A DNA stretch of 63,790 nucleotides, filler included, from Octopus bimaculoides (Eukaryota), in NCBI RefSeq assembly GCF_001194135.2. It is 6 parts of 6 records of this genome, joined end to end, with 100 filler letters (N's around TTAATTAATTAA, not from the genome) between each part and the next. Parts side by side here need not be neighbours in the genome. Positions count along the whole stretch, not along the records: positions 13,672 to 34,600 come from NC_068992.1; 5 more parts are not named here. One strand, given 5' to 3'. The notes beneath the pieces are model-generated. The model had not been told where the DNA came from. It did no database searches and worked only from the letters and a program-made list of their open reading frames with translations. This document shows positions 27,524 to 32,778 of the stretch, piece by piece. Both the position numbers and the translations under genes were made by a program. Every line of letters starts with the position of its first letter. The stretch's first letter is position 1.

Positions 27524-28925
27524 AAGCCCTTCAGGTAGATGGCCCTGCTCGATCTGTGGAAAAGGTGTAGGTAGAAACTCCATAAAGTGTACCCAGTGTA
27601 AGCTATGGACACATAACAGGTGCAGAAATATCAAAGGAAGGCTACCTGGAAAGATAGATTCTGTGTGTGGCAAATGCTCAGGAGCAATAAATGTTGAAAA
27701 TGTGCAGAAAACAGCCTCTGTCACATTTCAGTGGGGAAAACTATAAGCAGTTGAAAGCTTATGTTACCTAGGTGACCAAGTCAGTAGTGGGGGTGGATGT
27801 TCCGAAAGTGTAACTGCTAGAATAAGAATAGTCTGGGCAAAGTTCAGAGTGCTCCTACCTCTGTTGATAACAAAGGGCCTCTCGCCCAGAGTAAAAGGTA
27901 AACTGTATGATGCATGTGTGCAAACAGTCATGCTACACAGTATTGAAACATGGGCGGTGACTGCTGAGGACATGCATAAGCTTGCAAGGAATGAAGCCAG
28001 TATGCGCCACTAGATGTATAATATCAGTGTGCATACATGGCAGAGTGTAAGTGCCCTGAGAGAAAATTTGGACTTAGGAAGCATCAGATGTGGTTTGCAA
28101 GAGAGACAACTGCACTGGTATGGTCATGTGTTGCAAATGGATGAGGACAGCTGTGCAAAAAAGTGTCACACCCTAGCAGTAGAGGGAACTTGTGGAAGAG
28201 GTCGACCCAGGAAGACCTGGGATGAGGTGGTGAAACACGGCCTTTGAACATTGGGCCTCACCAAGGTAATGACAAGGGACTGAGGCCTTTGGAGATATGC
28301 TTTGCTTGAGAAGACCCGGCAAACCAAGTGAGACTGTAACCGTGGCCTATGCCAGTGCAGCATAACCAACCCATTTAAGAGTACCCATCAATCATTGAGC
28401 AATAAACTGCACTTGCGAAGGCCTGTTGAGGCAAGTGAAATTGTTGTCGTGGCTGATGACAGTACTACCTGATTGGCACCCGTGCCAGTGGCACGTTAAA
28501 AGCACCATTCTAGCTTGACAGTCCTGCCTGTCAAGCTAGACAGTTTTGCCTGACTGGCTCCTGTGCCAGTGGCATGTAAAAGCACCATTCGAGCGTGGTT
28601 GATGCTAGTGCTGGCTGACTGGTCCTGTACTGGTGGCATGTAAAAAGCACCATTCGAGCGTGGTTGTTGCTGGTACCGCCTGACTGGTTCCCATGCTGGT
28701 GGCATGTAAAAAGCACCAGTCAAGCATGGTCACATGTAAAAAGCAGCCACTATACTCTCGGAGTGGTTGGCATTAGGAAGGGCATCCAGCTGTAGAAACT
28801 TTGCCATATCAGATTGGAGCCTGGTACAGCCTTCTGGCTTGCCAGCCACCAGAAAAACCGTCCAACCCATGCCAGTATGGAAAGCAGACGTTGAATGACA
28901 ACGACAATGATGATAATGATGATGA
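27521..28925 (+). mobile_element. 5'-truncated RTE (RTE-X-like) LINE with PHD-like zinc finger, RT thumb, tandem-repeat 3' UTR and (GAT/AAT)n tail
   Basis: WPCSICGKGVGRNSIKCTQCKLWTHNRC...CGKC; YLGDQV; KGKLYDACV..VMLHSIETW; LHWYGHV; GRGRPRKTW. Confidence 0.9.
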
Positions 28926-29233
28926 TATATACATAGATACATATACACACTCACACACACACATATATATGTACATACGCATATACCTACATACATACAC
29001 ATATACACATGCAAACGTTCCCATCTAGATCTATGTATTTGTCTCATTAGTTTTTCAAGCAGTAACTTTTTGATAGCCTATTTGAGTTACAAACTTTCTA
29101 AGTAAGGCATATTTTTAGTGTGCTATAGGGACTCATGTGTCTGATTATTGACCAACATTTCAACATACTCATCAACATATACCCATTAGTCCAAAATATT
29201 ACACACACACACATGTATACACATACATACCTA

Positions 29234-29279
<46 letters not shown>

Positions 29280-29308
29280 TATACATACACGATGGACTCT
29301 CCCATATA

Positions 29309-29399
29309 CCTCTCATCAAAGGTCGGTAGCTATCGGACACTGACGAAGGGAAATAACCCTGAAACCCTGGTCCGTTCATGCTAAGATCAAGATGAGAGG
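29309..29399 (+). ncRNA. Type I hammerhead ribozyme, copy 1 (predicted cut after C29372; A-C mismatch at the first stem I pair)
   Basis: CTGACGA, stem II aggg/ccct with AAATAA loop, GAAA, GTC; extended stem I TAGC/GCTA, GGTC/GATC, CCTCTCATC/GATGAGAGG. Confidence 0.8.
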
Positions 29400-29657
29400 G
29401 GTACCTTCCCTTGGCAAAACAAACAGGACACAGTAGTGTGTCGATAAGCCAGCTGGAGGAGATGTCCTCCTGGGGCTAAAGCAACAGTAACATCCACCCC
29501 TAGGGGTCAGCCACACTTAAGTGGCAATACACTTCACTTTATCGTGCAGTTACTGTTAATACTTCATTTAGAGAATTAACATTGCTTGTTTTCACTTTCT
29601 CGATATCAGTGAAGAATTTCACTGGAAAAATATACATAAGGTTGCCAAGAATTTATA

Positions 29658-29748
29658 CCTCTCATCAAAGGTCGGTAGCTATCGGACGCTGATGAAGGGA
29701 AATAACCCTGAAACCCTGGTCCGTTCATGCTAAGATCAAGATGAGAGG
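29658..29748 (+). ncRNA. Type I hammerhead ribozyme, copy 2, fully canonical (predicted cut after C29721)
   Basis: GGACG CTGATGA aggg aaataa ccct GAAA ccctg GTC CGTTC plus the same extended bulged stem I. Confidence 0.88.
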
Positions 29749-29964
29749 GGTACCTTCCCTTGGCAAAACAAANNNNNNNNNNNNNNNNNNNNNNNNNNNN
29801 NNNNNNNNNNNNNNNNNNNNNNNNNNNNNNNNNNNNNNNNNNNNNNNNNNNNNNNNNNNNNNNNNNNNNNNNNNNNNNNNNNNNNNNNNNNNNNNNNNNN
29901 NNNNNNNNNNNNNNNNNNNNNNNNNNNNNNNNNNNNNNNNNNNNNNNNNNNNNNNNNNNNNNNN

Positions 29965-30360
29965 AAACATGATCAGGGCTTTACATCAAGATATGAAAGC
30001 TAGAGTTAATTTTGGTGGTAGGCTCTCTGAATCTTTTGCTGCGGAAAATGGAATAAAGCAAGGAGACCTTGATGCACTCACCCTCTTTGTAATATATTTT
30101 GCTGTTGTATTGTTACATGCTTTTCAAAACTCTGAGGAGGGTATTTACATAAAATATCGAACAACAGGGAATGTTTTTAATCTGACCAGACTGAAATTCA
30201 AAACGAAGGTTTTTACTTCAGTCATTAGGGAACTTTTGTATGCTGACAATTGCGATCTGAAACAGGTCTGCAATCTCTTGTATCTGCATTTTACAAAGCT
30301 TGTGATAATTTTGGCTTAACCATCAACTTGAAAAAAAATAAACAGTTGTAATGCATCAAC
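29965..30360 (+). pseudogene. RTE/BovB-like reverse transcriptase fragment
   Basis: MIRALHQDMKARV...SESF..ENGIKQGD..LTLFVIYF...GIYIKYRTTGNVFNLTRLK.KTKV...IRELLYAD. Confidence 0.85.
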
Positions 30361-30799
30361 CGGTGTGTGGTGCTGTTTGTAACCCTGCTAAAATTTTTCT
30401 TAAGGGAAAGTTACTCGAGGTTGTTGATTCATTCGTCTACCTTTGAAGTTCTGTTCAAAATTATGGAAATCTTGATAAAGAAATACAGCTGTGAATTCAA
30501 AGGGCAGCAAAAGCATTTGGCAGCTTGTTGTCACGTGTTTGGTGCCAGCAAAATATAAATATGAATACAAAGCTGACTCTTTACAAATCATTTGTCTTAC
30601 CATTCCTGTTGTATTCCTGTAAAACTTGAACTTGATATGAAAGGCATTTTAAATTGTTAGAACAATTCCACCATAAATGCCTTCATCGCATTTTAAAAAT
30701 TAAATGGAGTTCTTTTACTCCAAACACAGATGTTCTTGCATCTGCAGGCATCACCTCAATTAAATATATGATTCTGAGGAACCAGTTGAGATGGTGTGG

Positions 30800-30995
30800 C
30801 CATATTCAGTTCTATATTTAAAAGATGAGGAATTATGTACATTATTTACATTTGAAGGATATTTGTCCTCATCTTGTTTGTTGTTAACACAACGTTTTGG
30901 TTGATGTACCCTCCAGCCTTCATCAGGTGTCTTGGGGAAATCTAGAACCTGGCTTCTCATTCCTAAGGTATTTTTCTATGTTGTTAATATTATTA
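30800..30995 (-). mobile_element. Short Penelope-derived repeat with a CpG-decayed minimal hammerhead (30886-30931)
   Basis: Minus strand gacac CTGATGA aggctg..caacc AAAAC GTT GTGTT; related copy at 63254-63302. Confidence 0.6.
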
Positions 30996-32778
30996 TTGAG
31001 TGAGAGAGCAGTGCATGCCATCAAAGTGACACTGGGGTAAAATATACGAAGCCCATTATACCCATCATGACTACTCCTCTGAGACATTCCATTTTATTAG
31101 ATTTGTAGGCGATGGCAAGACATCATAGGATGAATGAATCAAAAAACTTAGCTGAGATGTAGTCCACTACTATATCTTATTCCAACTTATTTTCCTTTCA
31201 ACACATTCCTCCCATCACATCTGTCCTTGTTGAGAGCATTGGATCAAATGAAACTCTCTTCTCTCTGTTTCTCTTGTTTTAATGCTGTTGCTAACAACAT
31301 ATCTGCATTCGGTTTGTATCATACTTGCAAACAGTCTGAACTGATCTACACCAAATCCAAGTTCCCTCCGATAAATTTGCATTGCACCCACCATGTCTTG
31401 ATGTGTTAGAGGAGACAGAATGTCATCAGTCTCTGCTTCTGATTTCCACTTACTGGTCGTTTTTACATCTGGTGTATTTCATCTGATTTCTATGTCCTTT
31501 GACTCACAGTATTATCACCGTTTGTACCTTCCCTAGTTTATAAATTTCGACTATTGATGCCAGTGGTAACTACAATGAGCCTCTTTTACAATAGAGAACT
31601 GAATTGCTCAATATCCGATCCTCCATGATTGTTTTCGTTCAGTTTCCTTGTATGTCCCCACTGTCCTGCTTTTGTTACCAACTTTGACCCTCTGCAAATC
31701 CCAAATTTTATTCTGGTTCGCAGGAACAACTGCCTTCAAAGTCTTATATTGTCATTCAATGCTCAAAATAAGGAGTAGAAGGACAGCTGACAACTGAAGA
31801 AGGGTCGTTTTTTTATGTTACCTGTTTTGTTTTTCCATTTGTTTCTCTTGTTGTTTGTGTACCCAACTTTATTTTAGTATTTCAAGTTGCTTATGTTTTG
31901 TGATGTGCTGTAACCATATATGCATATCTATATACATATATATGTATGTATGTACATATATGTATGTATATATATATATANNNNNNNNNNNNNNNNNNNN
32001 NNNNNNNNNNNNNNNNNNNNNNNNNNNNNNNNNNNNNNNNNNNNNNNNNNNNNNNNNNNNNNNNNNNNNNNNNNNNNNNNNNNNNNNNNNNNNNNNNNNN
32101 NNNNNNNNNNNNNNNNNNNNNNNNNNNNNNNNNNNNNNNNNNNNNNNNNNNNNNNNNNNNNNNNNNNNNNNNNNNNNNNNNNNNNNNNNNNNNNNNNNNN
32201 NNNNNNNNNNNNNNNNNNNNNNNNNNNNNNNNNNNNNNNNNNNNNNNNNNNNNNNNNNNNNNNNNNNNNNNNNNNNNNNNNNNNNNNNNNNNNNNNNNNN
32301 TATATATATATGTATATATATATATGTATATATATATATATTATTTATATTATTATTTGATTGAACACCACTCATCCATTTCCAAGTAAGTTTATCTTAA
32401 TATTTTTGATGCGACTCTACCCTTTACTATTCTCTCTCTCTTCCCCTTTTGTTTTCTTTTTCATCCTTTCTATAATTCTTTTTTTCTTTTTTCTCTCCTT
32501 CACCATTTTCTATCTCTCTCTCCCCCTTCCTCCTTTACTCTCTCTCTCGTTGCTCACACATGACCATCGTCCATCTTTCTTTTCCTCTCATGATCATCTT
32601 TCTTTGCCTTCCGTGCTGTCATACAGACTGCACATATTCCTATCTATCTCCTCTTCTACCTTTTCTCTTGTCAAAGACAATATTTCTCCAGTGTTCACTA
32701 CTTTACCTATATATATATATATAACACACACACACATATATATATATATCATACATATAGTTATATATATCATATATA

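Follow-up and report, generated by a model that had tools for sequence, protein, structure and literature searches.

Could a short tandem repeat in an octopus genome be a retrozyme, i.e. a non-autonomous retroelement whose units carry self-cleaving hammerhead ribozymes and give rise to circular RNA? This question is raised by positions 29305-29772 of a stretch of Octopus bimaculoides DNA (assembly GCF_001194135.2), for which such a system had been proposed in a preliminary description. The whole stretch, referred to as the window, comprises 63,790 nucleotides, filler included, and consists of six joined parts; the locus lies in the 21-kb piece that derives from NC_068992.1 (positions 13,672 to 34,600). 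We consider it likely that the locus represents an incomplete tandem insertion, spanning 1.34 units of 349 bp or more, of a high-copy, non-coding and retrozyme-like family whose units each carry a type I hammerhead. In kind, this family would be a metazoan non-long terminal repeat (non-LTR) retrozyme similar to a hammerhead-bearing short interspersed element (SINE), with putative self-cleavage and circles.

The locus carries two hammerhead motifs in tandem

The locus is built from a direct repeat (29305-29423 and 29654-29772) of 119 nt each, with 98% identity and a period of exactly 349 nt. On the + strand, the pattern CTGANGA..GAAA..GTC was encountered only at 29340-29372 and 29689-29721, with an expectation of 0.11 per window. 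The repeat and the pattern search together bore out the proposal of two near-identical hammerheads with cut sites 349 nt apart. The proposed 349-nt tandem unit was supported by this period and by the two motifs, but just 1.34 units of 349 bp are visible before a 192-N assembly gap cuts copy 2 at 29772. A blastn search with a word size of 7 revealed no further family copies within the 21-kb piece. The coordinates of all features are collected in Table 1.

Both copies display CUGA(C/U)GA, GAAA, the pairs A15.1-U16.1 and C15.2-G16.2 around CCUG, and C17, which amounts to a complete hammerhead core, and both contain the 4-bp helix II with the AAAUAA loop that had been described. Helix I, which is open, comprises 9+4+4+5 bp (22 pairs), while helix III consists of 2 bp plus a tetraloop. 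In each copy, the 5' strand of helix I reads CCUCUCAUC, GGUC, UAGC and GGAC(A/G), and the 3' strand reads CGUUC, GCUA, GAUC and GAUGAGAGG. Every helix listed previously for the long, bulged stem I was recovered in the sequence as well as in the predicted 99-nt fold, with a single exception in copy 1, where the basal position of helix I is an A.C mismatch between A29339 (position 2.1) and C29373. In copy 2, all helices are made up of standard pairs, including G29688-C29722. A strict descriptor demanding at least 5 bp for helix I, at least 4 bp for helix II, at least 2 bp for helix III and an NUH cut site gave a single match in the piece, at 29689-29721, and none in 14 Mb of composition-matched random sequence; copy 1 failed this descriptor because of the A29339.C29373 mismatch. 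The two 99-nt domains were predicted to fold at -36.9 and -37.1 kcal/mol, with z-scores of -3.7 and -4.5 relative to shuffled sequences, while the opposite strand reached a z-score of -2.0.

Conceivably, the tandem arrangement could be an assembly artefact in which two dispersed copies were joined or collapsed at the end of a contig next to the gap. Copy 2 indeed stops exactly at the 192-N gap, the family comprises about 10^4 near-identical copies, which is a typical reason for contig breaks, and several sequencing runs lacked contigs of at least 99% identity over parts of the locus. However, copies 1 and 2 differ at two positions, which shows that one sequence was not simply used twice. Furthermore, perfect contigs from independent runs (at least 99% identity) matched 29336-29433, 29602-29657, 29628-29666, 29637-29692 and 29668-29714. 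The copy-2-specific nucleotides G29688 and T29693 lie within these contig-covered stretches, and contigs from independent runs bridge the junction from the spacer to hammerhead 2 without a mismatch. The order spacer-hammerhead-spacer is, moreover, general across the family, as judged from the loose-end consensus of DNA and RNA reads and from a 231-nt RNA contig. We regard the spacer/hammerhead 2 junction at this locus as real, and an assembly artefact as highly improbable.

The hammerhead helices are preserved by compensatory changes in the family

Several positions at which the window deviates from the family consensus are located in the hammerhead helices (Table 1). The positions 29334-29378 and 29339-29373 are mismatched in the window and paired in the family. 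At the pair formed by 29365 and 29370, which is U-A in 85-88% of the copies, the RNA-read counts were equal in five of the six columns and one read apart in the sixth. The distal part of helix I reads CUCUCAUC/GAUGAGAG in the window versus CUCUCACC/GGUGAGAG in the loose-end family consensus, with U-A replaced by C-G at one distal pair of helix I. Judged from subfamily consensus states and marginal read counts rather than from aligned individual copies, helices I and III were maintained by compensatory changes as the family diversified.

Helix III of the family is an exact 8-nt palindrome, ACCCGGGU in the subfamily of the window and AUCCGGAU in the majority of copies, of which the window's ACCCUGGU is a mutated version. 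Two weakening changes are private to the window copy: T replaces G at 29368/29717, and A replaces G at 29378/29727. Since the palindrome and one helix I pair were thereby lost, the window copy is probably a decaying relic. It belongs to a minority subfamily with a fully canonical CUGA...GUC core, in which T4 is found in ~14% of the copies, or roughly 1,900 copies. The T4 fraction (~10-14%) agrees with the fraction of the subfamily that carries C-G at 15.2-16.2 (~12-15%). Because of this agreement, and because the ribozyme is otherwise intact in every subfamily, its hammerhead ancestry is not in doubt. The possibility that CUGA arose by chance through CpG decay of a CCGA consensus unrelated to hammerheads was considered and rejected, as the consensus contains the other core positions as well as helices I, II and III.

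Variation within the repeat was found to be strand-asymmetric. Between 29300 and 29772, we counted 34 A/G versus 13 C/T variant places on the + strand, where the 119-nt repeat is taken twice. A/G variants occurred at 13.7% of the purine positions and C/T variants at 5.8% of the pyrimidine positions (odds ratio 2.6, p 0.005). This asymmetry could have been left by adenosine-to-inosine (A-to-I) editing, or by a reverse transcriptase bias, on an intermediate made of + strand RNA. The asymmetry among genomic copies would be explained if the family were an active octopus retrozyme in which the + strand (hammerhead-sense) RNA, as the transposition intermediate, is edited by the A-to-I machinery of cephalopods prior to its reverse transcription. 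Traces of RNA editing would in that case be inherited with the genome, but we judge this scenario very unlikely.

Family dimers are predicted to fold into double hammerheads

For the monomeric hammerhead, the catalytic fold was predicted to be 7-9 kcal/mol less stable than an alternative with shifted pairing. The values were -27 to -30 versus a minimum of -37 kcal/mol for the copies in the window, and -29 to -30 versus a minimum of -39 kcal/mol for the canonical family consensus. In the shifted register, CGGAC pairs with GUCCG over the cut site. With a helix III of only 2 bp plus a palindromic tetraloop, a single motif is therefore predicted to prefer this inactive pairing.

For dimers, the prediction was reversed. 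The double hammerhead was the minimum-energy structure for both the canonical consensus (-83.7 versus -78.2 kcal/mol for two monomers) and the majority consensus (-98.5 versus -93.6 kcal/mol for two monomers). In this structure, helix III is intermolecular and 8 bp long, the proximal helix I has 6 bp, and helix II is intact. When the window's own mutated sequence was used, the predicted dimer fold was not a double hammerhead. The earlier suggestion of a stem III that is too short in a monomer but can pair between two copies was thus supported for the family-consensus dimers and for the shortness of the stem, but not for the dimer of the window copy.

The complete 349-nt unit was predicted to adopt a branched, self-paired fold of -107.2 kcal/mol (z -3.9). 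In this fold, helix I is lengthened by CUUGGCAA/UUGCCAAG, which closes the branched spacer. The spacer had been called hairpin-rich, and every hairpin named was indeed part of its predicted fold, which has a z-score of -4.2 relative to shuffled sequences. As a circle, the monomer was predicted to fold at -106.7 kcal/mol with 52% of its nucleotides paired and a GC content of 0.433, again in the shifted register that hides the cut site. Such a fold offers a simple answer to the question of how circles could escape re-cleavage.

The family is abundant and dispersed

On the repeat stretch, contigs from four DNA runs accumulated. With single-copy word depths from the unique flanks of ~45-62 in run X1 and ~24-30 in run X3, the summed word depth of the hammerhead core bin (~0.71M in X1, ~0.34M in X3) corresponded to ~13,000 modules. 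The spacer core at 29444-29523, with summed depths of 2.4-2.6M (X1) and 1.4-1.9M (X3), corresponded to ~45,000-70,000 copies. In raw genomic reads at a coverage of ~0.7x, the two hammerhead copies together reached depths of ~12,000 (run X21) and ~10,000 (run X22), and the spacer core ~30,000 and ~20,000, respectively. Reads touching the family made up 0.42% (X21) and 0.31% (X22) of all raw genomic reads, and the family accounts for ~0.25% of the genome when the read-depth table is summed. Overall, we estimate ~13,000-17,000 hammerhead modules and ~30,000-60,000 copies of the spacer core. Adjacency of spacer to hammerhead and of hammerhead to spacer was common family-wide in the reads, and shortened copies are often found next to (TA)n, (CA)n or (CT)n, as is the locus itself on its left side. 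Exact patterns of the hammerhead core and the spacer core had 0 matches in metagenome and GTDB contigs, and protein searches with the translated open reading frames (ORFs) of the repeat as queries returned no candidates.

The family resembles retrozymes of molluscs and amphibians

The features that define retrozymes, which occur as solo, dimer and multimer copies, have been laid down in the literature (PMC7229834; bioRxiv 10.64898/2026.07.22.740005). The octopus family has a GC content below 50% (43%), is non-coding with stops in six frames, lacks LTRs, a primer-binding site and a polypurine tract, and is present in ~10^4 or more copies; a highly self-paired monomer RNA was found in the prediction. 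With respect to the non-autonomous retrozyme that had been proposed, the type I motif in a ~349-nt multi-copy, non-coding, low-GC unit is in favor, while the mostly dispersed copies and the minority status of the canonical core are not.

Metazoan non-LTR retrozymes are short tandem repeats (150-450 bp), each unit of which contains one type I hammerhead (PMC7229834); in the mussel Mytilus galloprovincialis, ~5,000 such hammerheads reside in repeats of 350-390 bp (Cervera & de la Pena 2020, PMC7229834). Like these elements, which we compared by description rather than by sequence, the octopus family has one type I hammerhead per low-GC non-coding unit of ~350 bp, occurs in thousands of copies in a mollusc, and has a monomer RNA that is predicted to be strongly self-paired. 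In contrast, the hammerheads of invertebrate retrozymes are described as efficient monomers, whereas the octopus monomer, with its 2-bp helix III and palindromic tetraloop, is predicted to be inactive. The octopus family also differs by its majority core (U4C), by the lack of abundant linear or circular RNA in the available RNA sequencing (RNA-seq) data, and by the mere 1.34 units that are visible. In unit size, weak helix III and palindromic tetraloop, it is similar to amphibian satellite 2 and to the axolotl elements HHR_Amex1 and HHR_Amex2 (330-350-bp units). As for these, cleavage of multimers would be expected to proceed through double hammerheads, and the copy numbers are 10^4-10^5. The amphibian elements belong to another phylum and are unrelated in sequence, and their dimer-dependent cleavage is experimental, while that of the octopus element is predicted from energies. 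In unit size and phylum, the octopus element is thus closest to the mussel elements, and in helix III and dimer logic to the amphibian ones.

A likeness to the Schistosoma Sm-alpha hammerhead had also been pointed out. We take the Sm-alpha and Sj-alpha elements to share with the octopus family a dispersed, multi-copy nature and a type I hammerhead with an A-rich loop II of 6 nt and a bulged helix I. Unlike Sm-alpha, the octopus repeat has no detected tRNA-like head, and its helix II closes with A-U. ARAGORN found no such head in 28000-31500, and in Rfam there was no match to tRNA, 5S or 7SL. With the minimal hammerheads in the pseudo-LTRs of Penelope-like elements, the octopus family shares a palindromic helix III implying dimers, partial-tandem insertions and the association with microsatellites. 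It differs from them by its full-sized helices I (22 bp) and II (4 bp), and by the adjacent reverse transcriptase fragment, which is from an apurinic/apyrimidinic (AP)-endonuclease long interspersed element (LINE). A preprint from 2026, restricted to vertebrates, traces their retrozymes to Penelope-like pseudo-LTRs (bioRxiv 10.64898/2026.07.22.740005).

These resemblances suggest the following life cycle. Multi-unit transcripts would first be made, in which lone motifs, according to the energy prediction, would prefer the inactive CGGAC/GUCCG pairing. Two motifs could then join via the 8-nt palindrome into a double hammerhead, which is the predicted dimer minimum for the family consensus. As known from the retrozyme literature, multimers might subsequently be cleaved as double hammerheads, and a host ligase of the RtcB type could circularise the resulting monomers. 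Finally, an autonomous element, most likely a Penelope-like one, would supply the reverse transcriptase that copies the RNA into solo or partial-tandem insertions, often at microsatellites. A Penelope-like mobiliser appears most plausible because of this microsatellite association, and an insertion bias toward microsatellites has been documented for Penelope-like elements (PMC8557442).

In the literature searched, we found no paper that links hammerheads or retrozymes to octopus or other cephalopods, in agreement with the earlier remark that no description of the element in octopus was known. A 2026 repeat annotation of O. vulgaris, in which ribozymes are unmentioned, assigned 11.6% of the genome to SINEs and reported 893 recently active unclassified SINE families (PMC13282606). 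The present family would add cephalopods to the animals with hammerhead retrozymes, and part of the pool of 'unclassified SINEs' in octopus would be ribozyme-bearing. Since type I hammerhead repeats are widespread in invertebrates, including molluscs, the existence of the family will be expected rather than surprising to a specialist. For an invertebrate element, three aspects are unusual: the predicted dimer dependence via a palindromic helix III, so far stressed for amphibian elements, the concealed cut site in the fold predicted for the monomer or circle, and the attenuated U4C core in the bulk of the family.

Evidence against a self-cleaving element

Several observations weigh against the interpretation as a retrozyme-like ribozyme family. 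At the level of the motif, the proposed Rfam check failed: no hammerhead model (RF00163 and relatives) matched at the gathering score or at E<=10 in slices of 47-575 nt (575, 71 and 47 nt). In addition, the closing pair of helix II is A-U, where hammerheads usually have G-C. The Rfam miss is likely due to the shortness of helix III (2 bp), to the A10.1-U11.1 pair and to a helix I that is long and bulged, and a match to an Rfam model is an operational classifier, not a biochemical definition. The only Rfam matches obtained were microsatellite 'microRNA' hits and C/D-box look-alikes. Among the latter, the core at 29684-29728 weakly matched models of C/D-box small nucleolar RNA and small Cajal body-specific RNA (6-9 bits); as CUGAUGA and CUGA imitate the C and D boxes, these matches are chance resemblances.

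The silence of Rfam would suit the idea that the motif is a chance hammerhead look-alike inside a structured repeat, the more so as the loose core pattern, at ~0.1 per window, would occur thousands of times per genome. This idea is countered by the full descriptor, for which the 14 Mb of random sequence held no match, by the presence of 22 helix I pairs in addition to helices II and III, by the compensatory changes between subfamilies, and by the predicted folding of the dimer, for which the double hammerhead has the lowest energy. We consider a chance resemblance effectively refuted, with a residual probability that is negligible.

At the level of the family, C4 (CCGA) is found in 86-90% and A17 in ~65% of the genomic copies. 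A passage in PMC3088659 states of a natural viroid U4C variant that the substitution 'considerably decreases activity in vitro'. This variant, which is cited in that paper (Perreault et al. 2011), carries the same core substitution as the bulk of the octopus copies; in the viroid it is described as rare and of reduced in vitro activity, while in octopus most copies of a genomic repeat have it. Moreover, ~77-80% of the family DNA reads continue into unlike sequence, a figure that is partly inflated by divergence and by Hi-C linker chimeras in runs X21 and X22. Most copies are accordingly short, partial or dispersed and do not form long homogeneous arrays. The 'GENOMIC OTHER' reads of X21 and X22 carry the palindromic bridge linker GGTTCGTCCATCGATCGATGGACGAACC, which identifies them as proximity-ligation libraries. 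No Penelope-like ORF (Penelope-type reverse transcriptase, GIY-YIG) was detected within the 21-kb piece.

The RNA data point in the same direction. In three raw RNA-seq runs, the family made up 0.006-0.008% of the reads, compared to 0.3-0.4% of the DNA reads. The ratio of hammerhead to spacer coverage was 0.39 in RNA and 0.40 in DNA, and the mate orientations in RNA were equal, without strand bias. Reads with U4 were not depleted across the cut site (C4 was found in 80-97% in RNA and in 90% in DNA), and the absence of an end pile-up at 29372/29373 or 29721/29722 in RNA-seq constitutes weak negative evidence; molecule ends were not in excess at any other position either. This low signal looks like background, such as would be seen if dispersed copies were transcribed by read-through or as parts of introns, or if a little DNA had been carried over. 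If the libraries were poly(A)-selected, circles will have been missed. Because the library chemistry is unrecorded and short reads cannot tell a circle from a tandem junction, the background signal is not evidence against circles. From an older RNA run, we obtained a 231-nt contig with a depth of 69 that represents a related copy and comprises the end of the spacer, a canonical hammerhead (CUGACGA, ACCCGGGU, GUC) and the start of the spacer. Of the self-cleaving circular RNA system that had been proposed, the presence of family RNA was thus retained, whereas signs of abundant unit-length RNA and of cleavage ends were missing from the available RNA-seq data.

Together, these observations bring up the alternative of a hammerhead-derived family that has lost its ribozyme function and has spread as an ordinary non-autonomous retroposon. 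The fold and the palindrome might then have been kept for recognition by a reverse transcriptase or endonuclease, or the family might be young. Such a family would account for the CCGA (U4C) core and A17 of the majority, for an RNA coverage that is low, symmetric, proportional to copy number and devoid of cut-site ends, for the mostly dispersed or partial copies, and for the non-catalytic fold predicted for the monomer. On the other hand, the majority keeps all catalytic core positions except for U4C, and A17 is an allowed cleavage nucleotide. According to the passage in PMC3088659, U4C was reported to be active enough in vivo for viroid infectivity. Furthermore, the compensatory changes preserve exactly the hammerhead helices, and ~1,900 copies keep U4, one such canonical copy being present in RNA. 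We therefore regard the loss of ribozyme function as rather unlikely and favor a retrozyme-like family that retains its type I hammerhead.

Surroundings of the locus

Table 1. Positions of the features at the locus, of the family consensus differences in the hammerhead and of the neighboring reverse transcriptase fragment (positions refer to the window).
Feature	Position	Strand	Remarks
Left flank	29200..29304	.	(CA)n/(TA)18 microsatellite, TA x18 at 29236-29271; array begins directly after, ~29305
Hammerhead domain copy 1	29305..29403	+	99-nt domain; predicted cut after C29372
Copy 1, helix I 5' strand	29309-29317, 29321-29324, 29327-29330, 29335-29339	+	Blocks of 9+4+4+5 nt
Copy 1, core CUGACGA	29340-29346	+	Conserved hammerhead core
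Copy 1, helix II AGGG/CCCU, loop AAAUAA	29347-29360	+	4 bp
Copy 1, GAAA	29361-29364	+	Core
Copy 1, helix III	29364-29371	+	A-U and C-G pairs plus loop CCUG
Copy 1, helix I 3' strand	29373-29399	+	Pairs with 5' strand except A29339.C29373
349-nt monomer	29373..29721	+	Stretch between both predicted cut sites; GC 43%; stops in all six frames
Spacer	29404..29653	+	Core ~29428-29525 is commonest part of family; read depth peaks at 29444-29523
Hammerhead domain copy 2	29654..29752	+	Core CUGAUGA 29689-29695; predicted cut after C29721
Further spacer copy, start only	29753..29772	+	Ends at gap
Assembly gap	29773..29964	.	192 N; array may extend into gap, where 3' end of insertion lies
Window G, family A in 73%	29336		G.U becomes A-U
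Window A, family G in 98%	29339		Restores 2.1-1.1 pair
Window T, family C in 90% (81% at copy-2 position)	29341		U4 becomes C4
Window C and G, family T and A, 88% each	29365 and 29370		Pair 15.2-16.2, C-G becomes U-A
Window T, family G in 99%	29368		Helix III becomes perfect palindrome
Window C, family A in 67%	29372		C17 becomes A17, allowed cleavage nucleotide
Window A, family G in 99%	29378		Adds sixth proximal helix I pair
Reverse transcriptase fragment	29965-30319	+	Decayed, directly after gap; YADN for YADD

The reverse transcriptase fragment next to the gap gave no Pfam or PDB match and none in a word-indexed search. Its relatives found with HMMER led to unrelated ENA contigs without the repeat. 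Since these relatives carry Exo_endo_phos plus RVT_1, the fragment belongs to an AP-endonuclease LINE and not to a Penelope-like element. The option that the array is the pseudo-LTR of an adjacent Penelope-like element was rejected, as the neighboring reverse transcriptase is of the LINE type. The depth of the fragment suggests a few hundred copies.

Overall, the region is repeat-rich, and microsatellites alternate with fragments of retroelements in a patchwork across the piece. Short ORFs were observed on the + strand at 28014-28247 and 18999-19442 (e.g. ...GRGRPRKTWDEVV...), which we take to resemble C-terminal parts of LINE ORF2; the ORF at 28014-28247 had no Pfam match. At 28548-28730, 0.6 kb upstream of the array, a 65-nt unit (GCCTGACTGG...TGGTGGCATGTAAAAAGCACCATTCGAGCGTGG) is repeated 2.8 times in tandem with 84% matches. 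Lastly, the region 30810-31080 represents another repeat of very high copy number, with summed word depths of ~3M (X1) and 1-1.7M (X3) corresponding to roughly 50,000 copies, and with a raw-read depth of up to ~3,000. Many of its copies continue with ...TAAGGGTACACCAGGCACATGCATCACAAC, and it is probably another SINE-like family.

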